Shown: in pieces, positions 14,397 to 62,700 of the stretch | Layout of the letters: each line of letters opens with the position of its first letter | Position numbering within the stretch: position 1 is the first letter of the stretch | Assembly: GCA_964247055.1 (NCBI GenBank) | Contig: OZ176056.1 | Span: 7,502,001 to 7,566,000, forward strand | DNA from: Paragordius varius | Taxonomy: Eukaryota; Animalia; Nematomorpha | Direction of reading: 5' to 3' | DNA length: 64,000 bases | Notes under the pieces: model-generated | The model's input: the letters and a program-made list of their open reading frames with translations, nothing else | What the model was told of the DNA's origin: nothing | Database searches by the model: none | Translations under genes and position numbers: made by a program

Positions 14397-17300
14397 TTAA
14401 CTATTCTTCATTGTTTCTAAGTGAACCTTTATATCGCCATAATCTTCGGTATTGAGGAGAATCAAAACCTGTATATAAAACACTTGTATAAAATATTATT
14501 GGATGCACATCAAAAAAATCATTTTTTCTAATAAAAAATATGACATAAAACATTATGAGAGACTCAATTTATGCAGTACTGAAAATTCCTTTATAATATT
14601 TTTTTAATTGACATTCTTTATTGTTTGAACTTTTTTTATCAAAGCAATAGAGTTTATAAAAGATTAATGAGTTTTTAAAATCTTAAAATAAAAATAGTAA
14701 TTCCTCTCCCTTATATCATAATTCCGATTCTGTGAAAAACATATGGCTACTATACACATTTTTAACTATTATAACATTTTAATAATTCAATGGTTATTTA
14801 GTTTTTTTCAATATTTTATACATATATAATTATAATAGATTATTATTCTACTCAACCATTTTTTTAAAAATGATAAAGTTACAAAATTTAATATTTTATA
14901 GAAGAAAAAAAGGCGTACCTTTTCATTAGCCAAAAAAAGTAGAGTGAGAAGTAATATAGGTTCAGATACATCTTGAAACATATTGAAGGTAGACTCATCA
15001 TTTTTAACACCCATATTATCCTTCAATTATTTATATAAAAGAAATAAAATTATTAAAACAAAACATAAAAATTAGAAATAATTTAATTTTGATATACTTA
15101 AATAAATTTTTGATTGCTAAATTTATGATTGAGTTATTATCGATTATTATTCACTCTTAAATAATTCTCACCCTCAAACAATTCAAATTCACCCTAAAAT
15201 TAAATTATATGTTTTCGAGCTAATAATATAACTCATAATACGTTATAATTTATTATTTTTTCAGCATTATATTAATTTTAAACTAAATTTAATTTAAAAA
15301 TAAATAAAGGTAATTAAGTTAGATGAATCTAACGAAAATTCATTAATAAATTTATTATTAATTTGCTGATATTACATTATATCATTCTAAAACATCTAAT
15401 TTATTTTACGGTGTTTGTAATTTAAAGGTGAATTCAAACTGTAAATGTTATAAATAATTGAGTTATTAGCAATTTATATATCTACTCCTTATTTAAGAAC
15501 TAAAATATTTTTTTGAATTTTCACACGATTTGTCTTTAAATTTAAATTCTTACTGTAGATCTTATCGAATCACGTAATCGAGAAAAGTAAGTCGCATGGT
15601 TTAACAAGGGTCCCCCCTTTTCGTTTTCATTTTGATCATCAGGATTCTTATTGACACGGTCAAATTGGGAAAATAAAATCTATAAATACAAACATATATC
15701 AAATAAGGCGTAAAATATATTTAATGGTAAACATAAAAAGGCAAAAAACTGAAAATATTTTACGAAAATCATAAAAATTTGATTAAATTAATATATATAT
15801 GCATATATGTATGAAACTAAAAAATATTGTGTTGAACGTTTTTTAACAACCTTATCCTAACTTTTATTAAATTAATTTAAAAAATTAAAAAAGCAAAAAT
15901 ATGATTGTGTATTTATAAAAAACAGTCTGTCGATTACAGATTTTATAACTTTATTATATATACAGTAAAAATTGAAATGATACGGACAAAACGTAAAATA
16001 TAAAGCCAAATATTTTATTCAAAAAGACAACCATACTTTTCAAATCTTGATTTTTAATATTTAAATAATTGTTAAAAATTGCAAAGTATGGAATAGAGAT
16101 GTATATTGGTAACACAATTAATCATATATTTTATAATTGTAAATGAATCATATATATGGGAAAATTTAAATTTAAAAAAAAAGAAATATTTGTCTTTATA
16201 TGTTTACGTTTTGTCCGTATAATTTAAGTTTTTACTGTAAAACTGGATTCCTATCTATTTTTATCGTTTCAAACTTTAAAATTACTTATATTAAAGGTAA
16301 TATACTTTTCAAATTTTTATGATAAAAAAGTTTAAAATATATATATTATATAAAACATACTGGTGACATGGGGTGTAAAGGGTTTTTATTATTGGAATTT
16401 ATTTCAACATTTTCTTGACTATTTTGAGGAGGGCTTTCCACTAGCAAATTCCTTTTTAAAAGTTCCCACAATCGACGTTTTAGGGCACGCATATCAGTAA
16501 AACGCCGCTTACGTTCATATTGAATTAGGAGATTTTCAATCTGTGCATAAGAAGACAGATAAATTATGAGAAATATACCATTTGCACTTCAAGAGTATCC
16601 TAAAACACTTCAACTTGGTCCTTAAACACTTCAACTTGGTTTAAAATAATAATTTAAAAATAAAAATTATAATTCAAAAATCACTTTTTTGTTTCAAACT
16701 AATTTTTTTTTTCAATTTAACAAAATTATTAACTTTTAAATGTTTTCAATGAAAAATTGTTAATAAGAACCCAATTTTAATTACGTATTAAAATCCTATA
16801 GATATCTAAAACAATTTTAAGAAATTAATAAATATATACGGTTTCTCAATGATTAAAAGTTGATATTGATTTAAAATTTATGTTAAATGATAGAAAATAG
16901 GTTAAAAACGGTAAAATAGATCAATGATATACAATTTGGTTAATAAAAGTTAAAAACTAAACAATTTTAAGGACTAAGTTGAAGTGTTCAAGGACCAACT
17001 TAAAATTTTCAAAGACCAACTTGAAATGTTCAAGGACACTCTTTAAGTGCAATGGTATATTTTACCATGTAAATTTGTACCATTGATCGAAAGTAATGAA
17101 TAAATTAAACTTTTGTGTAATATAGTAAAAAATTTATAGGGATTATCGAAAAAAAGTATATACTATGGAATATAAATAATTATAGTGTCATTTTTTACAT
17201 GAATATATTGAATTTTATGGAAAAGTTTATGGTATAAATAGAATAACTAAAAACTTATATTTAAAATTGTATAACCATATTAAAGACAAAACAACTTAAA

Positions 17301-20300
17301 AAAATAAATAAAGACAAATATTTTTTTTTAAAAGACAATAATTTAAATTTATTTATTAAAATTAGAACTCATTGTTTAAAATTGTGCAAAGTATAAAATA
17401 ATGTATATTCATAATACAATCAATTATGTATATTTTGTCATTTTATAATTAAATAATTTATGTGTAAAAAATTAGTGTTTATAGATAGTATGGTTTCTAT
17501 TTTGAAAAGCAAAGATATTTGTCTATATATTTTTATGTATTGACTGTATAATTTTGAAACTATAGTATTTTTTAACCGTAATCAAAAGGATATACCAAAA
17601 ATTTAAAGATATATAGTGGCTTCAGAAATTTCATTTTTTTTTAGTTTTATAAACTTTAACCTTTTTTAAAATGCGTGTTTTTATAAAAAATTAAAATTTT
17701 TGAATATTTTTAAAATTTTTTTACCTTTCTTGTGGGTTGAAGTAATTCTTGACCCATATACGTTTCATTCATGATATCTAAAAAAATTAATTTTAAATAA
17801 GTTTTACTTTAAGGAAAAAATATTTAATAATAGCTTATTAATTATTCATAAACCTGGAATTTTGTATTTTAAAATGTGTTATGAAACAAAAAAGTAATAA
17901 AAGGCAACGAAATTTTTTTTAAAAAATAATATATTTTTATTTAAATTTACAAACGGGGAATAGAGATAATTTCAGTACTACTGAAATTATATTTTCTATT
18001 CAAAAATAATTTTATATATATTTGCAGTTCAAGAGTGTCCTTGAACACTTTAAGTTGGTCCTTTAACTTTTTTGTTTTTTTTTTAACTTTTATCAATTAA
18101 ATAGTATCATTCATGTACTTTATCATTATAACCTATCTTCAATAAATTCAATATAAACTTTATATCAAGTTATTCAGAAACCTTATATCTTTATTAAGTT
18201 TTTAATATTAAATTTAAATAAGATTTTAGCACGTGTAATTATAATAAAGTTTTCTGGGTTGTTAATTACAATTTTTCATCTAAAACATTTATGTTAAATT
18301 GGGAAAAAATTAGTTTAAAGCAAAAAAAGTGGTTTATAAATGAAAAATCTTTGTTTTTAATATATACAATAAATTTAGAAAATTAGGTTAAAAAACAAAA
18401 AATAAATGCAAAAATTATGGTTAAATCCAAACTTTAAGTGTTCAATAACCTACTTAAAGTATTCAAGGACCGACCAACTTAGACTGTTCAAGGACACTCT
18501 TGAAGTGCAAATGGTATATATCACATTTTACAAAATATTAACTTTTTTACACCAAAAAAATACCATTTTTCTAGATTTTAGATTTCTACTTTATATTTGT
18601 TTTAAAATTATTAGATTATTAATAATTGATCAAAATACCATTGTTTTCAGCTTGAATTGATATATTCTCTGCAATTTGCAGAGATTTATTCCCAGATAAT
18701 TGATTGTTTTGATTATGGAAACTTTCATCATCATCGAAATCATTATTATTTTCGCAATCACCAGTGAAAGAATTATCATTCTTATTATGATTTAATATTA
18801 AAGTTTTTTCGTCGTTTAATATATCCCCTTCGATGTTTTGGTGACTAAAATTTGCAGTTTTAGAATTTTTAATAATTAAATCTTGTTGTTGTAAAGATAT
18901 GTGTTCTAACCATTCATTAGCTAAGGTTTGAGCTAAAATAGATTGAATTTTGACATAAAAATATATAAAATTTTCAAAATTCTAATATAAGCTTAATGAG
19001 AATGTTTGATAATTAAATTTAATAAATTAACTATTTTCAAAAATCTACGGTGTTATGGGGTGGAAAAATTAAGCTTCTAGAGACAATTACCGTTGAAAAT
19101 TAATTAAATTTGATTTTTGAGTTATAATTCTTTGTTTTAGATTGCAGAGTATGAAATAGAGATGTATATCGGTAACACACAATCAATGATATATTATTAT
19201 ATTACAAATGTTATTAAATCATTTTTGTAGTAAGTATAAAAAAGTATAGTTGTCTTTTGAAAAAAAATTTTATCTTTATATATTTTAACAATTAGTTTTG
19301 GCCGTATAATTTCATTCTATGTTTAATGTATTTTTTTTTCAAAAACCACTCTCAAAAACAATTTATTCGTACTTTGTAACAAAGATTGATGTGTCAAATT
19401 TTCAACTGTCAAGGCAAAAACATTGTTTTGAGATGTCCGGAAACTAGTTTTTTCAACATACGTAGTATAATGGAGTAAATGTTCCGTACTATTTAACTTC
19501 GATAAGCATGAGTTTTGATCATTTGATATACTGTTTACCTGTCTTTTATTTTGAGCATTTTGTCGTTGAGTTGATAATATGAGGTTTGTGGTTATGTTTT
19601 GTAATTCTGCAAATTCCTTACGGATTATATTATGGGAGGATTTTTGAGATTGTTGCCCCATGTCAGAAATCTTATATATATATATATATATATGTGTGTG
19701 TAATATATACACTGAGTTGGTCTTTGAACATTTTAAGTTCGTCCTTGAACACTTCAAGTTGGTCCTTTAACTTTTTATATTGTTTTTCACTTTTATCAAT
19801 CAAATCGTATAACTTTCATCTATTTTATCGTTTTAAACCTATTTCCTACTATTTAACATAAATTTTAAATCAATAAAAACTTTTATTCATTCAGAAACCG
19901 TATATCTTTATTAATTGATCAAAATTATTTTGGATATTTATAAAATTTTAACACGAAATTATAAAATATATAAGTTTTCTGGGTTAATATTTACTATTTT
20001 TCGTTGAAAACATTTACAAGTTAATAATTTTGTTGAATTGGGAAAAAATTATTTTGAAACAAGTGGTTTTTTAATTAAAATTTTTTATTTTTAAATGAAT
20101 AAATATATAGTATAGATTAAAAATAATAAAATAAATATGGTTAAATTAAATCTTAAAAATTTTAAAGACCAACTAGAAATGTTCAAGAACCCACTTAAAA
20201 AGTTCAAGGACCAACTTGAAGTGTTTAAGGAGACTCTTGAAGTGCAAATGGTATAATAAAAGTAAATAATAAAAAAATAGTTATTGGAATAAATCGTAAA

Positions 20301-21432: not shown

Positions 21433-21893
21433 TTTAACTTTTATAATTTAATTTTTTAATACATGTATCGAAAAAAATTTAGTAAAAAATATTTTTTAAA
21501 CATTTTATAATTATTAGAGCTTACGCAGTCTAGTGGTGGTTTTTCCATTTTTGGAGCTATGATATAACGTTTCAAAGTTGGGTTGATTTAAGGCAGGGTT
21601 TTCTAAATGTTTCAACATAACATAAATTCATATACCGTTTACATTTTAAATTTACTCTTAAACAATCCTTGAACAATTCAAATTCTTCCTTGAACAATTC
21701 AAATTATGTGTCGGGAAAATATAACTCCTCATCATTTATATGATATATATTTTTACGCCATAGTTTATTTTTTCAGCATTATATGAAATAATTAAACAGA
21801 ATTTCATATTTTAAAAATAGTATAAAATAAAGGTGAAATAACGCATAATTTTTATTTTAGGGTAAATTTGAATTGTTTAAGGGTAAATTATAA

Positions 21894-27900: not shown

Positions 27901-30311
27901 TGTGATAAAATTATTAAATATATGCCATTTACAAATTCAAATTTACCCTATAAATCAATTATAAATTTTCGGGCTAGTATAACTCGTCATTAATATGAAA
28001 TATATCTTTATGGCATAGTTTACTATTTGTATCAGTATTATTTAATTTTAAACAAAATTTCATAGTTTTTAGGATAAAAAATATAGGTATTCTTAAAAAA
28101 CATATAATTTTTTTAGTGTAAATTTGAATTGTTTAAGGGAGAATTCGAAGTGTAAATATATATATATATATATTAATATATAAGGTAAAATTACTAAAAT
28201 ATACTAAAATATCTTAAAAATTTATATGATAATTTTAATTTTATACATTATATTTGTCAGCGAAACCAATTTCTTGAGTAGCTAAACATATGTTTAAATC
28301 CTTCAAGTCGACTGAACTGAAATGTTCATCTATGAAATAAAGAATATGGAAATAATATATTTTAAAATAATTATTATAAATTACAGGTAAAAATGATTAA
28401 AATTTAATGAAATTATTATATTTTCATTGTATATCTTCAATCAATATTAATTTATTAAAAATTATTTAAATTCTTTAAAATGTGAAAATAAAAAAATCTA
28501 TAAAAAAAATTATGAAATATACTTATAATTTGATTCAAATGTTCATAACTATTCCCATCAGGCCCCATATTTGAATTTAATACATCTATATAAATATATA
28601 GGAATATTAAATTAATATATATCCGCAAAATAAAGAACAAAAAAATACCATTTTTATGCAGTAAAAATTGAAATTATACGGTCAAAACGTAAAATTATAA
28701 AGACAATTTTTTTTTCAAAATTTACAATTGTAAAATAAAATTGAACGTGTTAGATATCCCTATTTAACTCTTTGCCATTTTAAACACTGAGTTATATTTA
28801 AAAATATCAAGACTTAAAAAGTATGGGGTTGCCTTTAAGAAATAAAATTTTTTTACTGTATAATTAAACTTTGAATCTGAATGTGCTATAAAAATATATA
28901 TTATATTTCTTATTAACCTTATCGGGTAATTTATATAAAAATAAGTTATTATTTAATTATATAGTTGACATAATGAAAGTTGAAATTTTTTAGTTCTACA
29001 ATCGCGGCATTTTTACAAATATATATTTTATGGATAAGAATGTTAGATAATTAATTCAAAGATATTACTATTACTTTTCAATTCTTTAAAATTTTATTGC
29101 AAAAAACCTAATTTTCACGCACGTATAATATATATTTTATATTATGATGAGATATTAGTTATCATAATATATTCCTGAGAGTTAAATTGTAAAAAAAGTT
29201 AGCAATATTCAAAACCTTAAAATACAACAAATTTAAATTTAAAACTTAAAATCTCAAAAATTTTTCAAAAACTTTTAAAAATAAAAATCTAAAAGATTCA
29301 AAATATATAAAAACGTTTTTTTTCTAAACCATTAGTTGTATCCTCGTTTATTAGCTGTTGATCGTAATGGTTATCAAACGCAATTCCAAACATATCATTA
29401 GCTTTCATGGCAACATTGTATAACATTAGACCACTCGGGGACCCAGAATCAAAGCCCAAACAGATTCGATGGAATAAGGGATCAATCTATAATGTAAAAA
29501 AATAAAAATTACAGTAAAAAATGAAATTTTGACAAATAACATATTTTTTCGTTTTTTTTAAAAGTCAAACCCTTTACTGTTTTTTTTTTCAACCTTAAAT
29601 TTTATCCAATAAAAATCATTTCATTACTAAAATTAATTGAGGTGGGAATATATATAATGGATGATTGATCAATTTACATCTGCATTTTATACTTTGGAGG
29701 CTAAAATATAGAGTAATATTTTAAAAAATATAGGGCTTAAAAAGTATGGTTGTGTTTAGGAAAAAATGTTGGTCTTATTCTGTGATTTTTTTCGTATAAT
29801 TTCTATTTTTACTGTAAAATAAATACACTTTAAATAATAAATTATACAGTGATTTTGCTAATAGTCATCATAAATATGAAATATATTATGGCATAAATTT
29901 ATTATTTTTTGAGTATTATATTAATTTCAAACGAAATTTCATTTTGAAATTTTTTTTATAAAAAATAGATAATTTTTTATATATTCTGAAACTTATTATA
30001 TAGAGTGAATTTAAATTGTTCATGAGTATATTAAATATTTGTCTCACAAAAAATTTTTTTTGATATTCTGCTAAAAAATAATTTTAATAATATAATTAAT
30101 AAATGATTTTTAGTGTTCTTGTTAAATCAAGTTTTTTATTTCAAAAAAATATTGAAAAAAATTTATACCAAAAACCAATTTTATTAACTAATATAGCAAT
30201 CATAATGAATGCCTAATAATACTAAAAATGTAACTTATTTTATTTTATTTAGTATTTCACAATCTCAATAATAAAAAAATTTTTATGAAAAAAATAAAGG
30301 ATCAATATATA

Positions 30312-30346
<35 letters not shown>

Positions 30347-33300
30347 TTAAAGTAATAAATCTATCTACAAAAATTAAATATTTAAATTTTACTCTTAAAA
30401 TATACCATTTACTATAATTCACCCTTAAATATTTATTATGTTTTTTTAAGATTTACCTATGTTTTTTTTATATTTTTATGAATAAATTTTTGTTTAAAAT
30501 TAATATATTACTGAAAAAATAATAAACTATGCCATAAAAATTATATTTCTAGTGATAATGATGAGTTATATTAGCTGCCCGAAAAAAACATAATTTTTTT
30601 GGGGGGCAAATTTGAATTCTTGTTCAAGGGTGAATTTGAAGAGTAAATGGTATTATGTAATAAAAAAAAATTCAATAAATAAAATAAAAAGTATATACTT
30701 GTGGCACGTTATCAGGTTTTGTGCGTAAAAGATTTTTCACATTTTTTTCAATATTACATCCCACTGTACGGGCCTATGGATAGAATAAAAATATTCAAAA
30801 AATAAAAATTATTTATATAATTATAAAAAGTTTTCTGCATTGCAAAATATATGGAAGTTTTTTAGAAAAAAATCCAATTTAGATCAACCTTATTTTTTCA
30901 TTAAAAACTTAACACTTATTTTAAATTAATTGCTTTATATAAACATTATTCAATAGTCATTTTAAAAAATAATATATATATATATATCCCTTTATCTTTA
31001 ATATAAATTTATTAATTTTTTATAATTAGCTAATATTTAAATTTGGATTGAATATTGTATTAAAACATTTAATAAAAAAAATTTAAAATATAAGCAAATA
31101 TCAACATAAAATCCCAAATTTATTGATTAAAAATATTTGTTAATTAAACATTTAATTCTTTACATATTTTTCAATAAAGTTGTCGTTAATTAAATATTGA
31201 AGTTGAAACTGATTGAATATGTTTAATTTAAAAAGAAATAAGTTTTGATACGTGATAATAGGAAATTATAAAAAAAATATTTTTTTTTAAATTAATTTTA
31301 TTTATTCGAGTAATAAAAAATAATTATGGTTAATTACTTTTGTACGTTTAACTTTTTGAGGTAACAATTGCCCCTCAATTCCATCTTCTTGCATATCTTG
31401 GTTCATTTTTTGCCTTTCCTCTAAATATATATGTATTTAAAAAAAATGCAAATTAAAAAAACGAATTTATTCTTTCAAAAGACAACACACATACTTTTCA
31501 AACCTTAAAATAATCCTATTAAAATCACACTAAAAACAATCTTAAATAGGTATGTAAGGGTCAGGAGTTCAGATTCGGAGTTTTGTGGTAACAAAGTAAT
31601 TCCCGTTATAACTTAAGATCTTTACATTGTTCTGTGGAAAGGTTACGTTGATTCAAGTCCATTTTCATATTATCATTATAAGAAAAGAGTGGTCGCCCCT
31701 TTCTCCTTTTGTCATCAACATTAACAGTTTTTAAAGGGGTGGGGTGTGGCGTCTCTTCTTTGAATATGACAGTTAGAGGCGTAATCTATTAGTTTGGATG
31801 ATATAATAATCGATTTTATCGGTTTTTTTGAAATGAAAGTTGGTATTTCTGGTGTACGAAAGCAGCGTTTGAGTATTCGGCTATCACTAGTTAGGAGTTT
31901 TGTTTGATTAGTTAGGAGTTTTTTTATGACCATGTTTCGAAACCATAGGTAAGAACTGGTCTTATTCCTGCTTTGTAAAGATACCATTTATTACGATTGT
32001 TAACATTTTTGTTTTGGAAAACATATTTTAACTGATTATATTTTATCCAATCTTGTTGTATTCTGCCTTTTGTGGGCTTCCCTGAGATGAGACATCTCCT
32101 AGGTATACAAAAGAGTCTACCGATTCGATGTTATGTCCATCAATGTTAAATAGCTTTGGTCGATTAAAATTATTATTGCTTGGGTCTAAGCAATTTAAAC
32201 ATTTAAAATTTATTACATTTGTTAATTTGTCTCTAATGTTTAGAGCACACTTTTTGTGTACCCACATTTGACATGATATGCATTTAATCGAATTCGAACG
32301 TACTTACTTACTGCAAATGGAACAGGGGTATCTGGGTGACTTTCACTTTCACCCGTTATCATTATTTTTTGTTTTTGTGGCGTTTATGATCATTCCATAT
32401 TGTTCTAAGCATTTCTTCCACTTGGTATAGTTAGTTACCAGTTGATCCCATGATCGTGTTGTTATCACGAGATCGTCGACGAATAACATTTCCCAAGGGG
32501 GGCATTCAGTTCTTATGTCCTGCGTTGCCGCATCCATTATAGTTATAAAAAGGAGTGGGCTTAGGTCTGAACCCTGATGTAGTCCAGCGTTAGTTGGGAA
32601 GAATTTGCTTGTATTGCCGATATTGGTTTTTTGGTTTTTGTATTTTTGTAAAGATAAGATTTGTGTTTTTATTGTTCCTCTATTCCGTTTTTACGCAGTG
32701 CCCATTGTGAATTGTGGAGCGTGGTATTTAATCAAACGCACGTTCCAGATCTACAAAGACATGGTATAGCTTTTGTTTATTTTCCAGATATTTTTCTTGT
32801 TAACTATTGTGCTACTGTTTGGACGGAATGCAAACTGATTCGAATTTATGTTTATATGTTTTCTCAGCCTGTTTTTTATATAATTTCGATAATAGTGTAT
32901 GTTCCAGAAATTTCAGAGGTCTGTAGGACGATGTTTTTTGGTCGATCGCCATTATTTTTATAAATGGAAACAATAGCTGGGAGTTGGTTTGTAATTATTA
33001 TTTGGTTAAAAAGTTTTGTCAGATACTCTACAGTGTTTTTGATGAGTTGAATGAGGTCGACTTAAAGGCTGCTTGATTGGGCCTGGAGCTTTGTGGCTTT
33101 TTAATTTATTGATTGCAGTTGTGACTTCATCTATGGTAATTTCTTGTGTATGGGACCAGCTACGGGTGTAACCGTATTATAATGTTTGGTCGGATTTTTT
33201 TTGGTTGAGTTGTTTTTCTAAAAAATTTCTTTGACTTTCGAGGGATTTGTTATTATATTATCATTCACATCTTTAATACATTTTATGGTTTTATAACATT

Positions 33301-35959
33301 TTTATTATTATTATTAAGGTTTTTGAGTCTTTTAATAAACATGGCGTTTGGTATTTAAAATTTTTTTCCTAAACTTTCAATTTAAAAAAGAGTATGGGGT
33401 TGTCTTTTAGAAAAAAACATTTGTCTTTATATTTTCCCGTTTTGTCCGTTGTGGCAAATATTAGTAATAGTTACAAACATTCTCAGCCAAAACAATATAT
33501 TTAAGAAGCACCAGTCAGATTGAAAGGAGAGAGGGATTGAAAAACTTTGACGAATTCACATTCCTTATATCAAGGAAATGACAAGGGTCAAGGTTAATAA
33601 ATACTGTATCAACTTACGAACCTTAATCTGGTCTAAGCGAAACACTAAAAAAACGAATATTGGCCTATGATTTGATTAACAAAACTTCTTCTAGAGAAAC
33701 TTTCTTGTTGGTGATTTTAATTGCCATATTAGTAATGTGATAGTGCAATGATTACCATGGCATTCATGGGGGGGAGGACGGGTGAAAATCTCGATAAGAT
33801 AGGTGAGAGTTTACTAGAATTTTCGCGGAACAAACATGTTCCCCTAAAGCCCATATAAAGTTAGTTTTTGGTTATACTGTATGATCATTTTTTCTACTAC
33901 AAGTTTACTTACGAAATCGTAAAAAGCATTAAAATCTATTAAAAAGTTAGTTCATGCTTTCTATTGTGGAAAAACGATGTGGCTGGCTATTTTAATTTTG
34001 AAAATTGAAATGTGCAGGATCCAAAGGGTTAACTCCTTGTTACGGGGAAAAAAACGCTTAAAAGTTGATAAAAGTTGTTGAAATCAACTCATAACAATCT
34101 TAAAATATCTTGTTGTAATAATTAATTAAGTTACCAACACACATCTCCTCTCTTTTATACTTTGGAGTTTAAAACAAATGATTTATACCCATATATTTAA
34201 AAATCAATCAATTTTAAGAAAAAAATATTTGTCTATATATTATTACGTTTTGTCCTCCGTATAATATCAATTTTTACTGTATTTTCAAAATTTTAAAATA
34301 AAAATGCCGTAAATTTTGCGCAAATTATTATAAATTTTTTAAAAAGCGTTTTTAACATACTTTATACTGAAAAGTTTTGTTACAATTCAATTCTCAAAAA
34401 ACTATAAAATTTTTAAAGGTACTTATGCTATTTTTCTAAAAAATTATATATTTTGAAAAAAGTTTTATAAACAAGCATGCTTAAGTAGTGAAAATTGAAA
34501 AATAAATTATTTAAGTTTCAAAAATTTATACGTTAATAATTTTTACCTTTTTCTTTATTTATAATGAATCTTATAAAAAGTAACTGACAATTTCATAAAC
34601 ATTTGTATAAATTTAATAAAAAAGTGGAAAATTTTCAATTAAAACATTTCATAAGTTTATAAAAAAAAGTTTTTAAGTTATTAAAATTTTTTTTAAAAAA
34701 TAACCCGATTTTTGGCACAGTATGGAGAGCAACTTGAATGCCTCAGAATAATATCCATCAACACGATATGAATATATCTTAGTACTGGCATCAATGGTAT
34801 TGCTAGCTACCTATAAATATATTTATAAATTAAAAATGAAAAATATAAATTTAATTTAAAAAATGAATTATATATTTTTCATTCAGATTGATTTATTTTT
34901 TTTATGTAAAAATCTAAATTCAAAAGATGAAAAAAATGTAAAAACCAGAAAAATAGATATGGTTTTTAAATAGTCATCTATTAAAAATTTATATATATAA
35001 CCTATCGTTTCGTTCTGGATGCCAATATAAGGGTAAAAATAATATTTTACATTAGATAAAATTATTATAATTACAATTTATTTTAACCCTTAATTTTTTT
35101 TAAAAATAATTTAATAAATTATTAAAATTATAAAATATGTATTATATATTTTTTACATATCTTTTCCTTATTTCTCATAATCCAAATCAAGAGGTTATAT
35201 TTAATAGTTGAATGTAAGTTACATAATTTTTACCTGTTTATATATATTGTGTTATATTATCAAACTTTTTTTATTATTAATGGTAAAATTAAAAATTCTC
35301 TAAAAAGGTTTTTTTATAAATAATACAATCAAAATAAAAAACATTAATTTTTAATTATTATAATTTATGTTTCGGGTTTCTACGTAAGGTTTAGACATGT
35401 AAATTAAAGTCATATATTTAACAAATGTATTCAATAAGTTAGAATGTGGTCAGAAATCTAAGATGAATACAAAATATATATCTATTAATTTTTATGTTAT
35501 ATCTTTGATAAATTTGATTTAATGATAATAAAAAGAAGAAACCTGGAAATTGGTATCATTTTGGGATTGAGAGTGCACAATTTGAGACATATAATCAATC
35601 AGATGCAATTTATAAGCATTATTAACATTAACTTTCTAAAAAAATTAATAAAGAAAAATAACGTTTTCGGCGCATAATTTGATACATGTTGCATAATGTT
35701 CAGACATTTCTGTATTACTCATGGTAATTTTATTTGATTTTCTATTATCAATATACAATATATAATCTAACCTTTTGAGTTTAAGAATTCCTGATTCCTG
35801 CGCGCGTTGTAATTGATTAGTATGTCTTTCAATTTTTTCATTTTTATCGTCCGGCCCTTCATCAAAAAGAGATATTTCATTTGTTAAACCGTTTAATTTG
35901 CTTGATATACGTTTTGGTTTTCTTACATCATTCACAATATCTTCCCTTAAAATAACCAT
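14397..35959 (-). CDS. NCAPH: Condensin I kleisin (CAP-H/barren), ~1002 aa; exons 35663-35959, 35543-35635, 34705-34810, 31338-31420, 30699-30773, 29330-29486, 27371-27621, 26204-26495, 24819-24876, 24078-24259, 22135-22293, 20792-21060, 19373-19670, 18639-18932, 17955-17995 (tentative), 16361-16540, 14919-15020, 14397-14468
   Basis: EHYATCIKLCAEN|KVNVNNAYKLHLIDYM, VASNTIDASTKIYSYRVD, IDPLF, DMRALKRRLWELL and LLFLANEK match conserved CAP-H motifs; all junctions GT-AG and phase-consistent (CDS 3009 nt). Confidence 0.93.
15963..16237. mobile_element. Tc1/mariner-type MITE family R3 (CAGTAAAAATTG...TACGGACAAAACGTAAAAATATAAAGAC TIRs, TA TSD), representative copy
   Basis: TA|CAGTAAAA ... TTTTACTG|TA. 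Other full or partial copies near 17300, 19140, 21099, 22320, 23470, 25120, 27660, 28659-28858, 29512-29814, 33400, 34090, 38620, 43600/44200, 52310, 53100, 60060, 61010, 61560-61920. Confidence 0.85.
16578..17055. mobile_element. MITE family R2 (CCATTTGCACTTCAAG termini, 21-bp subterminal repeats AAGGACCAACTTGAAGTGTTC)
   Basis: TA-flanked inverted termini; further copies ~18018-18514 and ~19705-20251, remnant near 21530-21700. Confidence 0.8.
22661..23242 (+). mobile_element. Non-autonomous Helitron, short subfamily, in an NCAPH intron
   Basis: A|TTTATATATTTATAAAAATGG start (TC changed to TT); hairpin CTCGGGCTGCGTAGCACGAG then CTAG|T; homologous to 1174-1765. Confidence 0.85.
23847..24032. 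mobile_element. Near-palindromic foldback MITE family R4; sibling 26571-26743 (TA-flanked); related inner element 52918-53075
   Basis: Arms TATGCATTTTAATGATTGCTTATTTCACACTA...CAGTAGTGTATGGAAAAAA and their reverse complements. Confidence 0.75.
31590..33290 (-). mobile_element. Decayed RTE-clade (RTEX-like) LINE: RT, Cys/His finger insert and C-terminus
   Basis: EITIDEVTTAINKLKSHKAPGP, HQGSDLSPLLF, MLFVDDLV, WVHKKC...FKCLNC, IRPVLTYGFETW and KRRKGRP in broken frames; boundaries approximate. Confidence 0.85.
33500..33835 (+). mobile_element. LINE AP-endonuclease fragment, opposite orientation to the adjacent RT remnant
   Basis: VSTYEP, LVGDFNCHI, HGIHGG.G.GE and GESLLEF-like pieces with frameshifts. 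Confidence 0.6.
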
Positions 35960-36197
35960 TATTAATTATGCGAGTTTTGAAAAGTCCGCTTTGTTTTTAT
36001 GTATGTGTGAAAACTTGACTATAAAATAAAAAAGTTCAAATTTCAACAATAATTAGAATACTATAGGTTTTTGCAAACTACCAATATATAAGGCTTACAT
36101 TTTTGTTTTATATAATCTTTGCTAAAACTAATTTTAAGATTCCTGTGACAATTCTTTTAAAAAAAAATATTTTTAGAATATAGAATCGGCCAAACAT
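35960..36197. promoter_or_regulatory. Putative bidirectional promoter (238 bp between divergent ATGs)
   Basis: NCAPH ATG at 35959 (-) and orphan ATG at 36198 (+); TTTGAA (CHR-like) on both strands, but such hexamers are common in AT-rich DNA. Confidence 0.55.
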
Positions 36198-39100
36198 ATG
36201 GACATTTTAAAAAACGATAAGATTATAAAAACTGCCAAAAATGATTCTACTAATGCTAATTTATTGAATCCAACTAATGATAATAACTCTATTGCGGATT
36301 TTTTCCCGTTGAAAAAAGCGTTGCAACTTACCATAGACTCCTATGATATCACCAATAAAATTAGGCTTTTATATCATCGTGACAGTAGAGAACTGGAAGA
36401 TAAATGTGTTAATAAATTAATTGGAAAACGATCCGTGATCGACTTAAGGTATATTGCCATATACGTTTTATAGACGTAAAGAACAAATGGATATTGAAAA
36501 TATGCTATATATTTTACAACATAATTTGGAGCACATCTTAACCAACATTGAAAAAACGGATCATGTAAGCAAAAATTATATTTATACCAATTTTTTATTA
36601 TAATATGATCATTTATCTGATTTAGTTATACCTCCAAAAAAATTTGTTGAAACAACATCTTGCTCAATCGATTCAAAATTATAAAAAGATCTTAACTAAT
36701 ATCCGGGATCTTTTATCAACTCAAGACACATCATCATCCACATCTACTAATTTACCTGAATCAAATACTGTAACTCGCACCATCACCAGGAGTTTGAGTC
36801 ACATTCAAAGTTTGACTTGCCCAGGTTTGCCCCTTTTTTGTGCGGTTTTTTACAGCTTATTTTAAAAATATACCATTTATTTAAATTCGATTTTATTTAG
36901 AGGAGATTCCATTCAATTTGGATTATATACGGATCATGGAAGGTTTGGAGTCTTGTTTAAGGTTTCACATTGAACAAGATGGCGCAAATAAGCAAAAGTA
37001 AAAATATGGCTTTTAACTAAATGCATTTTCTAATTATAATTATATAGTTTTTTAGTCCAAAGTTTTTTAGTATTCAGCGATAAAACTTGATTCTAAATTT
37101 ATTTTTCAAATTATTAATTTTTATTTAGATTAACCCAAAATTAAAGTTCTTATCGTGAAATCTCGGCTTTCTTGCGTTTTATTTAACGTTAACCCGTTTA
37201 GTATTAAAGGTGTGAAGCTTTCTGTTCTCATCATTTAAAATAATTAAACGACCCTTTATTATTTTTGAAACAATAAATAATAAATGCTGCATTCGTGTAA
37301 TCTTCTCTATTTTTTAAAGAAGTCCGCACAGTAGTTATTTTAATATCTTATTAAAACTTTAAAAATCTTGATCCTTTTCCCACTAGGATAGGTGTAAAAA
37401 AGTGATATCTTATCAGTGTGCATATATATTAAAAAATAAAAACAAATAGTATTCGTTCGGCTGGTATTTAGGCCGATAGTCGCCCATTATAGTTGGTAAT
37501 ATTTACAATTAAATCACACTTGCTTGTGAAAGTGGGTTAATGATTTTCCCAAAAAAGTGATTTTGAATATTTATGTAATATAAAATTTCTTAATTTATAT
37601 GTTTAAAATTTTTGACACTGTAGAATTGCAAAATTATCTGAAATGGTGAAAATCGCTCCCAAATCATACCCGATCCCTGAAAATAAAAATGTCGTTAAAC
37701 CAGAGAGTATAATTAATCAGCCAGATATCATTGATCAATTAAAGTATATTCTTAAAATTGCGGAAGCACTTTAAATTAAACATTTTTACGATTTTTTCAT
37801 ATTTTTTATAAATTATTTTACACTTACTTCAACCTTAGAATATCGCAGCAGAACAGCGAAAGTCAACTCCTATTAGATAATTATATGTTGGAGAGAATGA
37901 AAAGCAAAAATTTAAAATGGCCCTTGCCTCCTTCCATGGTATATTAGTTGTAAAAAATAATTAATTGTAAGATAGGATTCAAATAGTTAAGTTTGTATTT
38001 CTCTCCAGATTTTATAACACTAATTTCTACATGATAAGGAAAGTAAAAATATAGTTAGTTATCTAATAAAAAAACGTCATTTTTAGCTAAATAGGGCTGA
38101 AAATAAACTCAGCCATATTTATTTTTACAAAAAGTTTTTCTATAAATTTAGATAAATATGGAAAACAAAATCAAATTTATTTTACGAGAATTAAATGAAA
38201 CAAAAACACTCAATCAGGAGCTACAAAATCGTATCAAAACTATGACGGATGTTGAGAAGCAGGCTCATAAAGCCTTAGATATACTAGGAATGAAATGTAT
38301 GAGGTCTGCCATGGTCAGAACCAATAAAAATATGCATTCCATAGAATCTGCTCAAAAAAAGAAAAATCTAGAAAAAACTCATGATCCCAATAAAAATAAT
38401 TTAAATGATAATGGTAGCATACCAATCCTATATAAAACATCTTTGAACGATGGTTTAAATTCTAGCTACCCAAATGCCATCGTAATGAAACAGAGTAATT
38501 TAAAAGATGACACCTCTTTTCTAACATGTGACAGTAAAAATGATATTATCTCAAGTAATTATTAAAAGCAGATTGTCAAAAAACGGTTATATTTCACCAA
38601 AAAAGTCTAAAATTAAATCACTGTAAATATTGAAGTTATACAGAAGACCAAACGTAAAAATATAAAGACACATGTTTTTTTTAATCTGGTATTTTTTTCA
38701 TTAAATACAACTCATTGTATTAGATTGCAAAGTATGAAATTATGTAAATTGGTAACATTATCAATTATATATATTTGACAATTGTAATTAAAGTTTTTAC
38801 ATAGGAAAAATCAAAGGGTAAAAGAATGAGGTTTGGTTGTTTTTGGAAAAAATATTTGCCCCTATGTTTTAACATTTTATATGTGTGATTTGACCAAGAT
38901 TGCCTTAACTTAGATGCGACAATGGATGGATCAACTTTGAACACAATCAAAACTTTGGAAAATTGTCAAAAAAAGACTCAACAACAAAATAGCGTGAAAG
39001 ATAATACAAGTTTAACAGCCAAAGAAATTGGTAAAAAACTTACATTATCTTCATCAACGAATCATCCCATTTTCCCACAGAATATTAGTTTGTTACAAAA

Positions 39101-42100
39101 GATTGAAACACTTACAAGTCTGATATGTCACCTCATGTACCGAAGAGGGATAGATAGAAGGGTACATCATCTCTCTTTTTAGATTTAGCCCGCCCAACGT
39201 CCATAAATGACTACCTACATTATTTAAACGAATTTAACCAGGGGTGTCCAGCACTAATGATTTTTCCGGTCGTATTTTTGACTCAAAAAACTCGGCTGGT
39301 CGCATTTGAAATACATATATGGGCATTCATCAATAATGATATTGGATTTCAATCTAAAATTGTAAAAACACATGTTTCGTTACCCATTGGATGAAATAGA
39401 CTAATTCAAAAAACTTGTTTAAGAAAATCAATATATTTCTGTAAGATCATATTTTGGCGAATTTTTGCGGGTCGGACATTAAATCTCGACGCATGTAATA
39501 TCCCTGATTTTAACTTTAAAATAGCAATCGGACAAGCTTATAACAAGCATGAGCCAAAGTATTGAGGCGCTCGCTGCTTTTTCAACGTCTGTAAGGCTAA
39601 CAAGCTTAATTTTGCTGTATTTCTTAATAATATGAAATTTTTATAAATTTAAATTCCGCCGGTAATGAATAAATAGATTGTCATTTTTTTAGAAAACACA
39701 AAACATATTTTTTCGCATTTTTTTCCATAAAGCACCAGAACAGATTAAGGATATTAATTCTACATTAACATTCAATTATATTGACTGGATCGTTTATTCA
39801 AATTGGGCTCTTTATTTATTTATAAAATCACATTCACCGTATTCTATACTGATTTAATCCCTTAAGTTTTTAATTTTACAGTTGTGTTTTAATTAAAGGC
39901 ATGCCTCAAAATTGTTTGTGGGGTGTATCCAAAATAACTAAATATATCTCTAGGACTGTAATAAATATTTTATTAAATGATTATTACAGTCTTCATAATA
40001 TGCAGAACAAACCCCTGTAATTTCACTAAAATTAACAAAATTATTTTTGAAAAAAATGAATGAGTTAACATTATTCCAAATATATAGTTTTCTTGTGGGA
40101 ATTTAAATTATAGTTTGCTTAAAATGGTTAATATATGCAGAATACCTTGACTCAATCCCAACTAGTGAATGATACGTTGAAACGGCACACCAATTTGTTA
40201 AAAAAATATTCACTCCTTAAAGGCTACATCAAACTCCTGCAGGCAAATTTAGCCGGTTTCACTCAAGATTGGTGTATCATGGATAAAAAATTCAAGGTAT
40301 CAAACAAGAAATAAGTATTATTGAAAAATTTAACATGATGTATATAACGTGTTTCAAATTTTGAGATATGTTGAGTTTTGACTGCAAATATTTGCCTTTC
40401 ATAACTCCAAAAAATTGGGGGTCAATTGGCAAAAAAATTATGTAAAAATTGCGCACACCCAACGTAATTACAAAGATTTTTGCCCGAATAATTTTGGTTT
40501 CAATTCCATAGTTAGTCAGTCAAATGGTTTTTTTTCGGTGTTTGCATTTAAAATAGGTGATATTTGATGTGGCTTAAATAAGGAATATGGTTCTGGTATC
40601 AATTCTCATACAAAATTTTTAACTTAATTTAGCCTTATCCATATATTTTATTTGATGCTTTGCGATAATAATTTTAATGCAAACCCTAAAATCGATTTTT
40701 GTAAAAATATTACAATTTTTAACCTATATTTGTTGGTTAATATTGTATCTATTTATCATTATAATATTAAAAATATCATTGTATAGTATATGAAATAATC
40801 AATATGCTGATAATCAGCTGTTAACCATTTTTTGCTTCTCCTATATGGCGTTTGACCTTAATTTTTTAAATAAATTTACGCCAAAATATTTTTTAAAATA
40901 TATATACATATGACTAATGTAGGAAAAACTTGAAAGTATAAAACCTGAACATATGTCCCCAGAAATTAGGGATTTGTTAAAAAGTCAAAAAAGCTTACAG
41001 GATTTGCAAAATGTTGTTTCACACGATAAAAATTTATCATTGATGTCTGATGATCCTAGCAGCCGAACAAAAATGCAGGTTTAAATATATATATATATAT
41101 ATATATATATACACCATTTACAATTCATATTCACCCTTGAACAATTCAAATTCACCATTTTATTCAAATTCACCCTTAAACAATTCAAATTCACCCTAAA
41201 AATAAATTATGTGTTTTCGAGATAATATAACTCATCATAAATCTGAATATATTTTTACGAGATAGTTTATTGTGTTTTCAATATTATATTAATTTTATAC
41301 AGAATTTTATATTTTAAATATATTATAAAATAAAGGTGATTTTAATTTTAAAAAAACACATAGTTTATTTTAGGGTGATTTTGAATTGTTTAAGGATTAA
41401 TTTGAACTGTGTAAATGGTATATATTTTTACAATTAAATTAATTTTGGGAACAATTATATGAAAAAGTTAAAAAAAATATTTTTAAAATTTTTTTGCAAT
41501 AAACTTTAATTTTATAACACTTTTGATCAGGAATGCAGCAGTCAACCAATGGCAGAAACGCTAAACGACAATCAAATTAACTCTTCTCTCTATACAATTA
41601 ATACAAAAAATACTGATACATACTGGACTGAAAATTTAAACACCGTAAAGACAAATTATTCATTGAATTATTTATTAAAATAAAAAAATATTTGTTTCAA
41701 TTTCACCCTTGAACAATTCAAATTCACCCTAAAAAATATGAAATTTCGGTCTTATATAACTCATTATTAAAATTAAATATATTTTCTTCATGGCAAAGTT
41801 TATTAATTTATTTCAATATTATTTTGATTATATACAAAATTTCTTATTTTAAAAATATAAAAAAATATATTTTTAATCTTAAAAAACACATAATTTATTT
41901 TAGGGTGAGTTTGAATTGTTCGAACGTGAGTTTAAATTGTTCAAGGGCGAATTTGAATTGTTTAAGGGTAATTTTGAACTCTAAATGGTAAATATAATGA
42001 ATGGCATTAAATTTTTATATTTTTAGTCTTGTACATCGATAAAAAGTGATTTGGATTTAGCCCCAAGTGAAACATACGTTCCAAAGTTGGTACAAAACAT

Positions 42101-47686: not shown

Positions 47687-48911
47687 CACTTGGATGCAAC
47701 TAGGGTTGTGTGACCGGGTCATGACCAGGTCAGTGACTATTTATTCCATAATCATTTAAAAAAACAACTGTTTTTTAAAAAATTGGTGGTAAATTTTTTT
47801 GGAAGACAGATAGTTTTATTGCTTTTTAATATACTTTTTAGAAATATAAATTAAATATTTAAATATGCTTATTTTACAATATAAAATTTTTAAACATGCA
47901 TCCTTTAACATTAGCATTTAGCATATCTAGTTTTTTGATAAACAATCAAGCATTTTGCAAAACATGCTATTATTCTATATATATAAACCAATAAAACGTA
48001 AAAACATTTTATAATTGGATATTTCAATGATGAAAGAAAGTGTAAAAAAAATTAGGTAAAATTTTATTTGAAATGTCCAGTATTAAAAGCTATGAATTTG
48101 AAGATTCAGAAGCAAGAATGTGGCAAACTTTATTTTAAAACAAATTTTTGATTAAATTTGATTGAAAATATTGTAAATATATAAAAATGCATAATATAAA
48201 CTTTTAAGAAAAAACATGACATTATTAGTGAAACAAAGTGTCGTTCGAACATTATTTTCACAATCCAACATCGCATGGTATTTATTTAAGTAAAGTGGTC
48301 ATGACCAGGGTTATGACCATGGTCTGACCGGGTCTGACCTGATTTTTTGAAAAGCAGTCAAATGCACAACCCTAGATGCAACACAATCATTTTAGTCCTT
48401 CGATTCAAATTGGGGTATTTAAATACCTTAGGCCTGTTATAATTTAATTTTTTAAAAAATATGGAAAAAATCGAAACCATGGCAAATTTTTGCACTTATA
48501 TAACATCAATAAACCGAAATATATAAAAATTAAGCAATACTGGATATTACTTATTTTAAGCCAAAACCGAAAGGTAAAAATTAAGTTAACGTGACATATG
48601 TGCAATGATAAAATTGAAAAATAATACAAAATTAACCGCTTTTTCTATTTCTGAAAGATGTATATTAAATAAAAAATTAGATTTAATATTCCCTTAAAAT
48701 TAAATGAAGACGATATTTTGCAAAAATTTGTAAAATAAAAATGGCGTCTACATGGAATTTTTTTAAAACAAAATTTTATTTAGATATTTTGGCATATTTA
48801 TATAATTTTTATTAGGATAAATGCATAAAAATTTGGGACTGTTTCCTTCAGTAGTTTTTATCTTAACAAAATTTAATCGGTATTTAGATACCCCAATCCG
48901 AATCAAAGTTT
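47687..48911. mobile_element. piggyBac-like (TTAA) non-autonomous element interrupted by a hAT MITE
   Basis: TTAA|CACTTGGATGCAAC start; after removing the insert it matches the uninterrupted sibling 49336-49904. Confidence 0.65.
47701..48374. mobile_element. hAT (TAGGG-type) MITE, 674 bp, perfect 8-bp TSD GATGCAAC
   Basis: TAGGGTTGTG ... CACAACCCTA TIRs; TGACC subterminal repeats; TSD at 47693-47700 and 48375-48382. Confidence 0.9.
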
Positions 48912-49335
48912 TAATTTATCGGACATGTTTTCATTTACCCTTCATTAATTTTAGTTTTTTAGCCATAGCGAATTTATATTCAAAATTTTAAAAATTACTA
49001 TATTGAGCCTATTGTAAAAAGTCATCTAGCCCATTGAGTTGGTTATTTAAAAAATATCTTAAGATTATTATAATGCTACATTTGAAAAGCGCTCAATTGA
49101 TAATTACACCTTGATTCAAATATGGGTAGATGCCGATCCTAATGTTTTGCTGTTACTGAAAAATACTAAAAAGGGCCTCAATTAATATATGCTCTCTTAA
49201 TAAAAATAATATGAATAAGCCAAATTCCATTATTAAAATTTAGTTTTGAAAAAAGCTCCAATCTCTTACAAAGCCCTTTTTTTATAATTCCTAATTTTTT
49301 TTTGAAATCACACTATTAATATCGAAAAGTATTAA

Positions 49336-49904
49336 CACTTGGATGCAACATATTCATTTTAGTCCTTCGATTCAAATGGATGTGGTTAAATACCCCAGGC
49401 CTGTTTAAAATTATATTCTATAAAAAATCTGGATGGAATCAAAACCATAGCAAAATTTTGGACTTATATAACATTAATAAACCGAAATGTATAAAAAACC
49501 TAATTCAAAAATACTTTATTTTACTTATTTTAAGCTAAAACCGAAAGGTAATAATTTAGGCAACGTAGCATGTGTGCAATGGTAAAAATAAAAAATAATA
49601 CAAAATAACCCTCTTTTTCTATAATGTTAGATGTAATTTAAATAAAAAATTTTAAATTTACCCTTAAAATTAAATCAATACGATATTTTGCAAAAATTTT
49701 GTAAAATAAAAATGGCTTTGAAGTAATTTGACATGGATTTTTTTACAAAACAAAACTTTATTTAGATATTTTGGTATAAATATAAAATTTTTATTAGGAT
49801 AGAAGCATAAGTTTAAATTGGGACCGTTTCCTTCAGTAGTTTTCATAAAATCCTATATCAAATTTAATCTGAGGTATTTATATACCCCAAATTAAATCGA
49901 AGGG
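49336..49904. mobile_element. piggyBac-like non-autonomous element, TTAA on both sides
   Basis: TTAA|CACTT ... GAAGGG|TTAA. Confidence 0.65.
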
Positions 49905-59700: not shown

Positions 59701-62700
59701 TTAACTTTACCTGTAAATTAAATCTATTTTATAAAAAAAATTTATTTATATATTTTTAAACACAATTTTGTAAACTCCACATATATAAAACATTGTTTTT
59801 TAGGGTTAATTTTTTGTGAAAAGGGCATATTTACACTCTGGCTGATTAATATTGAAGCATTAGATATTTTTGCGATTTTTATTTTTTTTGCCTTAAAATT
59901 ACTTCATAGCCAGCTAACAAAGATATAAATTTATTATATATTTGCAAATAAAACTATTACATATTTTATAAAGAAAAAACCCCATTTTTATGCTTGTTTT
60001 TTTTCATTACAATTTCAAAACGGATTGAGTGTGTTCTTTATTGATTTTAGAGTAAAACTTGAAATTATACTGTGGAAGGACAAAACGTAAAAAACATAGA
60101 GATAAATATTTTTAACAAAAGACAAAACCCCATACTTTTTTTAAAATTTTAATTTTATTAAATATAACTGATTGTTTAAAATTACAAAGTATGGAATAGA
60201 TATGTAAATTGGTGACACAATCAATTATGTATTCAAATAATTGTATACTTAAATTTTATAAAATAAATTAATAAGATTTAAATGGGTGTGCCTGTTGTGT
60301 CTTTTGAAAAAAAATTGTTTTTATATTGTTTTACTACGTTTTGTCCATGGTATAATTTTAACTTTTTACTTTTTTTTACTAAGCTTTTATAACTTTGATT
60401 TTGCATAAATTTTAACAGTGGAGATGATTTTAGCGATTTTTCAACGTGGAATAGTCAACCGAATAATTTCTCAAATACGAAAAATACCGACGACCAAGCT
60501 TTAACAAGCAAACAAACTCCTAATAATACGTTTAATTTTTTTGAAAACTCGCTTGATAACAACCGCAAATTTGATTTCCCCCATAGTAAATAAAGAATGT
60601 TTTAATCCTTACAAAAAAGGGTTTTTTTACTTAAAAAATTATGTAATAAAAGTAACTTTATACATTGTTAAGCAGGCTAAATAAGAAATTGTTTTATACT
60701 TAGGGTAAAAAAATCTAATTTATAAAGCGAGACCATGATTTAAACCGTTTTTTTATATATCCTATCGTTTTGAGTTATTTTTTATGGGATAATAATTAAA
60801 TTCTTTGTCAAATTTATTTGAATCAAACTAATTCAAAATTGATACATGGTAATATCATTTTCTTTAATATATATATTTAATATAAAAATTTAGGTGAAAA
60901 CCTTCAAAAAACTGTTGAAAAGAAGAATGATTTTACCAATAATCCATTTTTATCCTCACAGCCAGCTAAAACACTTTTAACTGTAAGAGTATTTTAATAT
61001 TACAATGTAAAAATTGAAATTATATAAGATTCATCGTAAAGGTCAAAGGACAAATATGTTTTTTTCGCTTCAATATACAACCATACTTTATAAAATCTAA
61101 TTTTTTTTAATTTAAGCTTTATAATTACAGATTATTTCATATGTCTATTCATCATTTTGTCATTGAAAACGATAGTATGTAAATAACTCAGGTTTAAAAA
61201 TATGATATACTAATTACACTTCAAATTCACCCTAAAATAAATTACGTTTTTTTTATTAAGATTAAAAATTAGCTATATTTTAAAAAATAGTAATTTAATT
61301 AAAATTAAAATAATTCTAATTCTAAAAAAATAATAAACTGAGCGATAAACATAAATTTTATATTAATAATGACTTTTATTAGTTTGAAAACACATAATTT
61401 ATTTTTAGGGTGAACTTGAATTGTTCAAGGGTGAATTTAAATTGTTTAAGGGTGAATTTGAATTGTTTAAGGGTGAATTTGAATTGTTCGAAGGTGAATT
61501 TGTTTTGTTTAAGGGTGAATTTGAATTGTAAATGGTATATATATATATATCTTAAAATTCTTAAAAGTATTTGTCTATTAGCTTTTACGTTTTGTCCTTA
61601 TATACTTTTAATTTATCTTAATATCAATAATTTCATTTTGAAAACTACAATTTGTTTTATAGTAAAAATTGAAAGTATACGGACATAACGTAAAAATATA
61701 ACGACAAAAAAATTTACTACAACACAATTATAAAACATATAATAGATTGTGCTACCTACTAATATACATCTCTATTACTTATTTTACAATTTAAACAATG
61801 ATATTTAAATTTTAAAAATTTGATATTGAACAAGTATGGTAGTTAGTTGTCTTTTAAACCAAAATATTTGTCTTTATATTTTTACGCATTTTGTCCGTCC
61901 GTATAATTTTTATTGTAAATATATTATATATATAATCTAGCCTTCCATAATCGTATCCGAAAATAGCAATAAAACAAGCGGAGGAGATTTAAGTTTGAAA
62001 GTTGATGAGAATTGTAAAATTATTAACAATACGTGGTCTGATCTACATGGGAAAATTGACCTTAATATCGATAATTTAAGGTTAACCCCCACACATAATA
62101 AGTCACAGGGCAAAGGAAACAACAATAACTTAGCTAACTACAGCAGTGGAAACGTATATGGAACATCGAAAAATCCAAATACTTTTATTATTGGTGCTGG
62201 TATAAATTTTTTTACATTTTGGATATAAAAAATTAATCTTTTCAGATCTTACATTTTGGTCCAAAGTATAATGAAATACTGATTAAATTTTTTGAAGTTT
62301 AAAAAGGATAGCCTTTAATGAAGGGTAAAAATTAATTGATTAACTTATTGGTTATAGCTAATTTATTATAATTGCTTTAAAACGTTGTTGTTTGTAATCA
62401 GTATATTTTGTACTTTAAGTTAACTAAAATGTTAGATTTTATCTTTTTATTAGTTTGATTTTACGTGAATTGTTATTAGTTAACTTTACTTTGTTATAAA
62501 AAAACATTTAACAGTTTAAATTAGAAAATACGTTTCAACAACTTTAATTTTTTTAAAAATAAATTTTCCAAATATCTTTTTTTCAATATTTTTTAATATA
62601 CCATTTTCACCATTTTTACAAGCAAACGCAACTAAAAAGCGTTTCGATGAAAAATGGTATATATTATGACAGCATAAAAGTGCATTTATAAGGAGTCAAA

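Follow-up and report, generated by a model that had tools for sequence, protein, structure and literature searches.

In the horsehair worm Paragordius varius (Nematomorpha), the gene for the condensin I kleisin CAP-H (NCAPH) is interrupted by a 27-nucleotide (nt) segment that is very probably a genuine U2-type GT-AG spliceosomal intron, ancient in position and phase 0, which would have shrunk in this lineage. The gene lies on the minus strand of a 64,000-nt stretch of DNA (assembly GCA_964247055.1, contig OZ176056.1, positions 7,502,001 to 7,566,000), hereafter the window, whose first letter is position 1 in all coordinates below, and it extends over about 21 kb from an ATG at 35959 to below 14919. 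An earlier reading of this DNA, here called the sequence-only reading, had proposed a 27-nt intron with an in-frame TAA at 35636-35662. These coordinates proved exact, and the segment holds an in-frame TAG as well.

On the minus strand the segment runs from 35662 to 35636, with GT at 35662-35661 and AG at 35637-35636, in the context TGC GCC GAA AAC/GT...AG/AAA GTT AAT, and in frame it translates as VIFLY-stop-FF-stop. Its guanine plus cytosine (GC) content of 11% compares with 16% in intron 3 and 29-39% in the CAP-H exons, within a window that is very AT-rich throughout (20-35% GC per 2 kb). Because use of the nearest AG downstream of 35636 would lengthen the segment to 31 nt and shift the frame, and because no alternative GT to the donor at 35662-35661 lies near the end of the homology, the 27-nt pair is the sole frame-keeping combination of GT and AG. 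The donor is GTTATTTT, in which GTTATT fits the consensus at +1, +2, +4 and +6 only; since it lacks the extended 5′ consensus (A/G)TATCCTT, a U12-type (minor) intron is ruled out. Inspection by eye shows a run of seven T residues before the TAG acceptor and a TTAAT containing a candidate branch A, 9 nt from the acceptor and 17 nt from the donor. Precise elimination of the DNA, instead of splicing, was set aside in view of the GT/AG ends and the ancient intron position described below.

The identity of the gene follows from several searches. When the minus-strand exons were scanned one by one, four of them matched the Pfam family Cnd2 (PF05786, condensin complex subunit 2) colinearly, at profile positions 91-121, 122-156, 220-266 and 658-699. 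The second match, from the exon at 34810-34703 alone, scores 35.6 bits and exceeds the gathering threshold of 29.8; the third comes from the piece 29486-29310. The first (E value 1.4e-5) belongs to exon 3, which begins exactly at the first base after the AG of the 27-nt segment, and the flanks of intron 3 abut in the profile (121/122). An exhaustive search with the exon at 34810-34703 led to the closest protein, P0001, which has 870 amino acids (aa) and is 89% identical over that exon. By word search P0001 is the CAP-H of Gordionus sp. m RMFG-2023; it carries PF05786 and is encoded on OX940785.2 of GCA_954871325.2 (locus L001), which is apparently the one described under the name Gordionus montsenyensis. 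By homology, then, the gene is CAP-H. Condensin I, of which CAP-H is a part, is essential and serves in chromosome packing. The exons that could be recognised, from the ATG through to the C-terminal ..FLANEK motif, all have open frames and lie in colinear order. Exon 1 has in-frame stops upstream of its open reading frame (ORF), and tblastn with P0001 aligns from residue 14. The divergent middle of the protein (about residues 284-710 of P0001) was not mapped onto the window by tblastn with P0001, P0003 or P0004 (the last two are introduced below); this poorly mapped region is likewise divergent in the Gordionus protein. Sequence searches of the PDB with exon 1, exon 2 or exon 3 singly returned no kleisin, because single-exon pieces are too short.

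Comparison with homologues places the 27 nt precisely between two conserved blocks. Besides P0001, the proteins fetched were P0003 from the hemichordate Glandiceps talaboti, P0004 (an ORF of 692 aa from a 2.3-kb Logan contig that lacks introns), P0005 from an oomycete and P0006 from the owl Athene cunicularia. Excising the 27 nt fuses ...CIKLCAEN to KVNVNNAYKLHLIDYM, and all of these homologues read without interruption through ..(C/S)(I/V)(K/R)(L/M)..EN K(I)..N(A/S)..LHLID.., which bears out the suggestion in the sequence-only reading that removal of the segment restores a contiguous CAP-H motif. In tblastn searches of the window, the alignments of P0001, P0003 and P0004 are each interrupted at the segment by exactly 9 codons. 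In a MAFFT alignment in which the exons of the window were entered as separate rows, the end of exon 2 and the start of exon 3 occupy adjacent columns, and the end of exon 2 falls in the same column as ..AEN/..TEN in all homologues.

The position is shared with other animals, which answers whether it is conserved beyond this species. In the Gordionus ortholog, the same Asn/Lys boundary of the same gene (..AEN/K..) reads GAA AAT/GT...AG/AAA ATT around a 45-nt intron (L001 10289-10333) that also contains an in-frame TAA, and the annotated product omits these 45 nt; the annotation was made by STAR and BRAKER with RNA-seq, in a genome of 26.9% GC (Gordionus genome preprint). In Glandiceps the boundary is GCT GAA AAT/gtaagt ... 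ctgtag/AAA ATC, with an intron of 910 nt (L002 5074-5983), and in Athene (L004) an intron of 308 nt occupies the same place. The intron is in phase 0 in all three, as is the 27-nt segment. Orthologous introns in Gordionus, Glandiceps and the owl make this an ancient bilaterian phase-0 position, of which the 27 nt would be the shrunken form. The next boundary (..NFQ/VAS..) is common to these species too: the intron there measures 732 nt in P. varius, 152 nt in the Gordionus gene and 1045 nt in Glandiceps, and the owl has one as well. In Gordionus, as here, the intron at the Asn/Lys boundary is the second of two adjoining short 5′ introns; its 45 nt exceed the classical animal minimum, in contrast to the 27 nt of P. 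varius, and the two introns share no sequence similarity. The Gordionus gene (L001 10001-52790) spans 43 kb with an intron series of 45, 45 and 152 nt followed by introns of 0.25-14 kb. Since introns 1 and 2 there each measure exactly 45 nt, the pattern of short introns at the 5′ end is common to both worms; for CAP-H, a size below 30 nt was seen in P. varius only.

A second tiny segment, overlooked in the sequence-only reading, lies immediately upstream at 35771-35742, and we think it quite likely, from its sequence and position, that it is another micro-intron. Its context is AAA AG/GT...AG/A AAA TCA, which splits an Arg codon (AG/A) directly before KSNK. The annotated first intron of the Gordionus gene (L001 10165-10209), also 45 nt long, interrupts CGC AG/G AAA TCA before K-S-N-K, at the same position and in the same phase, and Glandiceps has a 2743-nt phase-2 intron in an Arg codon 1-2 codons off this site. 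GC content is 17% in the 30-nt segment versus 29-31% in the flanking exons. Since its length is a multiple of three and it is free of stops, the segment is hidden inside a long ORF. The two tiny introns would thus be introns 1 and 2 of the gene, after nucleotides 188 and 267 of the coding sequence (CDS), and are followed by an intron of 732 nt and kb-size gaps.

Taken as a process, our proposal is that a phase-0 intron of ancient bilaterian origin, placed between the Asn and the Lys of the motif ...C-I-K-L-x-x-E-N/K-I/V..., shrank to 27 nt and would now be removed by the spliceosome. Intron definition would be the probable route, with a minimal GT(T/A) donor, a TAG acceptor behind a T-run and the candidate TTAAT branch site. 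Removal would be obligatory, because the two in-frame stops precede nearly the whole protein. The 30- and 27-nt introns would adjoin within the first 267 nt of the CDS, and the later introns would be of ordinary or great length and carry transposon copies. As no RNA was placed on the locus, we infer splicing of the 27-nt intron from these features.

Several points weigh against this interpretation. None of the runs found in the run search is listed on record as RNA. Three runs that bear the same species label and were guessed to be RNA (X6-X8) gave no contig of at least 90% likeness on 34300-40200; the neighbouring gene in that interval is uncovered too, and these runs may be shallow, derive from other tissue or represent a divergent population or species. 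A word search of the protein collection with exon 1 found nothing, and one with the first 270 Gordionus residues found two bird proteins only and no nematomorph transcript fragment. Exon 2 alone matches nothing in Pfam or the PDB, so the upstream anchor of the 27-nt segment rests on the alignment with four homologues. The genome could also hold a second, intron-free CAP-H copy elsewhere, and the DNA run considered below may share its sample with the assembly. Finally, an ORF-only census of the window, which counted 20-35-nt GT..AG segments that bridge open frames, gave 260 for GT-AG (30 of low GC) versus 285-494 for control dinucleotide pairs (25-70 of low GC). There is no enrichment, and therefore the case rests on homology, phase and position and not on the GT..AG pattern alone. 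With GT-AG no commoner than the control pairs, the ORF-only census was dropped as a micro-intron caller.

Three other explanations were considered. It is improbable, in our estimate, that the segment is a real intron of low splicing efficiency whose retention, leading to the stops and then to decay, tunes CAP-H output, in which case its size would be regulatory and not neutral; in its favour, both stops would cause a truncated product or decay, and the very short introns of Microsporidia are reported to have a median splicing efficiency of about 25% (Hadjez et al. 2026, PMC13644364). It is very improbable that this CAP-H copy is decaying or non-functional, with the 27 nt a retained or inserted frame-breaking piece and the working gene elsewhere. 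Such a copy would agree with the lack of RNA, and the middle third of the protein is unmapped in the window by homology, so that intactness is unproven; however, the recognisable exons remain open and colinear over their whole range, the GC content of the 27 nt is intron-like, and the segment has exact GT/AG ends at an ancient intron position that Gordionus also uses. As for the DNA itself, an independently assembled short-read contig (Logan, run X1, record 4; 356 nt, depth about 620) agrees with the assembly letter for letter and without gaps over 35445-35796, a range that takes in both tiny segments (27 + 30 nt); the 27 nt are therefore not an assembly collapse. An assembly or sequencing artefact, either a longer intron collapsed or 27 nt spuriously inserted, is therefore scarcely credible, even in an AT-rich region with T-runs that are error-prone on some platforms, given this contig and the short (45 nt) intron of the related Gordionus at the same place.

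The features assigned to the gene and its long intron are collected in Table 1. The sequence-only reading had also credited the gene with introns above 3 kb. Two long gaps between recognisable exons, one of 5.2 kb from exon 4 to the next recognised exon (34702-29487), which contains an RVT_1 fragment, and another of about 8 kb (26100-17775), make such introns likely; this falls short of proof because small, divergent exons may split the gaps. Between exon 4 and the IDPLF exon, a search by motif turned up no missing exon in either worm.

Table 1. Coordinates of CAP-H exons, introns and the intronic retroelement fragment in the window.
Feature	Position	Strand	Description
CAP-H exon 1	35772..35959	minus	ATG 35959-35957; 188 nt; ends in AG, phase 2; GC 31%
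Probable micro-intron 1	35742..35771	minus	30 nt; GT..AG; phase 2; without stops; 17% GC
CAP-H exon 2	35663..35741	minus	79 nt; ...KSNKITMSNTEMSEHYATCIKLCAEN; 69% identity to Gordionus P0001
Micro-intron 2 (predicted)	35636..35662	minus	27 nt; GT..AG; phase 0; in-frame TAA and TAG; 11% GC
CAP-H exon 3	35543..35635	minus	93 nt; KVNVNNAYKLHLIDYMSQIVHSQSQNDTNFQ; Cnd2 91-121; 71% identity to Gordionus
Intron 3	34811..35542	minus	732 nt; GT..AG; phase 0; 16% GC
CAP-H exon 4	34703..34810	minus	VASNTIDASTKIYSYRVD...; Cnd2 122-156; 89% identity to P0001
Degenerate reverse-transcriptase fragment	32352..32690	minus	RVT_1, 58 bits, E 1.2e-15; neighbouring frames broken
CAP-H exon	29364..29486	minus	IDPLFHRICLGFDSGSPSGL...; 3′ end not fixed; tblastn P0001 179-218
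CAP-H exon fragment	28259..28333	minus	tblastn P0001 259-283, 48% identity
CAP-H exon fragment (..LLQPTRK)	17719..17775	minus	tblastn P0001 711-729
CAP-H exon (IENLLIQYERKRRFTDMRALKRRLWELL...)	16361..16540	minus	Cnd2 658-699; tblastn P0001, P0003, P0004
CAP-H exon (ILFSQFDRVN...)	15554..15679	minus	tblastn P0001 784-817
CAP-H exon	14919..15017	minus	C-terminal ..LLLTLLFLANEK motif, then GT; tblastn P0001, P0003, P0004

Repeats are frequent in and around the gene. A frameshifted remnant of a retroelement of the type without long terminal repeats occupies 31600-33200 on the minus strand, in CAP-H orientation and within its long intron, and includes a weak, sub-threshold PHD/zinc-finger-like match at 32046-32303. 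A dispersed repeat at 38630-38830, resembling miniature inverted-repeat transposable elements (MITEs), is represented in the window by 19 or more diverged copies, many of which lie within CAP-H introns. Because its word depth in DNA run X1 is about 396,000, against about 600 in its surroundings, this MITE-like family is extremely abundant genome-wide. Another repeat, of short unit length and found beside (TA)n runs, occurs at 16560-16640, 17000-17060, 19630-19766, 20180-20280, 21660-21735, 41050-41200, 41900-41990 and 61410-61570, with translations such as ..NLNCSRVNLN.., ..LKCSRTNLKCS.. and ..FELFKEEFELFK..; this is probably another abundant family, MITE or satellite-like, that populates introns and spacers.

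Candidate segments of similar size also occur outside CAP-H. At 47737-49336 (minus strand), four low-GC GT..AG segments of 29, 20, 22 and 24 nt bridge open, non-coding-looking ORFs. As micro-introns they were rejected as probable chance matches, and they indicate that ORF logic alone over-calls micro-introns in this window. On the plus strand, a 25-nt GT..AG segment at 36449-36473 bridges two open frames in the divergently oriented neighbouring gene; neither a homologue of that gene nor synteny was found in the Gordionus flank, which leaves this segment unanchored.

Introns of this size bear on how genes are annotated. Common aligners read gaps below about 21 nt as deletions, and gene finders of the AUGUSTUS type have a minimum intron length near 40. 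Such settings would truncate genes like CAP-H in automatic annotation. If the lineage-wide pattern proposed in the last paragraph is true, nematomorph genes would be broken systematically wherever a gene finder's minimum intron length is set higher, and the gene loss reported for the phylum could be too high as a result. BUSCO completeness of the Gordionus genome is only 71.6% (Gordionus genome preprint). The word 'intron' is absent from both that preprint and a comparative-genomics preprint on nematomorphs.

Introns shorter than about 30 bp were long held to be absent from animals, and a survey of 51 animal genomes (September 2026) found introns below 30 nt only in myxobolid Myxozoa and in Dicyema japonicum (Hadjez et al. 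2026, Mol Biol Evol, PMC13644364). A 27-nt intron at an ancient position in an essential gene of a repeat-rich ecdysozoan would extend this list; PMC13644364 names no nematomorph, and Nematomorpha (Ecdysozoa) is a different phylum. The introns of myxobolids and Dicyema belong to the same length class (medians of 22-27 bp) and likewise occupy conserved, ancient positions between conserved exons (PMC13644364; Lu et al. 2019, PMC6736024), and the signals read by eye in the 27-nt intron resemble their donor, cut to about GTa, and their A residues upstream of AG (PMC13644364). All three, hairworm included, are parasitic lineages. However, most introns in myxobolids and Dicyema are tiny and their genomes are compact (67-75 Mb in D. 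japonicum and H. salminicola; about 20-200 Mb in myxozoans), whereas in the hairworm CAP-H the two 5′-most introns alone are tiny and the later ones, from 0.7 kb up to several kb in length, contain transposon copies. A 27-nt intron in a gene that also has kb-size introns would set the miniaturisation of introns apart from the compaction of genomes.

In this placement the hairworm gene is closer to flatworms, whose microintrons form a short class beside kb-size introns, are mutually adjacent and 5′-biased, as in the hairworm CAP-H (Ershov et al. 2019, PMC6530080), and in Opisthorchis felineus are easily overlooked when annotation software is set to a high minimum intron length (PMC6530080). The flatworm lengths peak at 37 and 90 bp, for a class defined as below 75 bp (PMC6530080), compared to 27 and 30 nt here in an ecdysozoan. 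We therefore regard the case as a new lineage for a known feature, introns below 30 nt, with a flatworm-like placement. It is reasonably likely that horsehair worms represent a third independent animal lineage that splices introns below 30 nt, in this case restricted to the first one or two introns near the promoter, with later ones kb-long and transposon-rich. If this is true, extreme shrinkage would be driven by something linked to the 5′ end of the transcription unit (co-transcriptional intron definition, promoter-proximal processing) and not by genome compaction. To the class of introns below 30 nt the present case contributes a firmly anchored instance from an essential gene, whose orthologous intron could be followed across four species. 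With regard to splicing itself, PMC8363638 describes a 56-nt intron of human HNRNPH1, dependent on SPF45, which is U2-type and too short for the normal arrangement of polypyrimidine tract and U2AF; the same applies to the hairworm intron, which at 27 nt is half as long.

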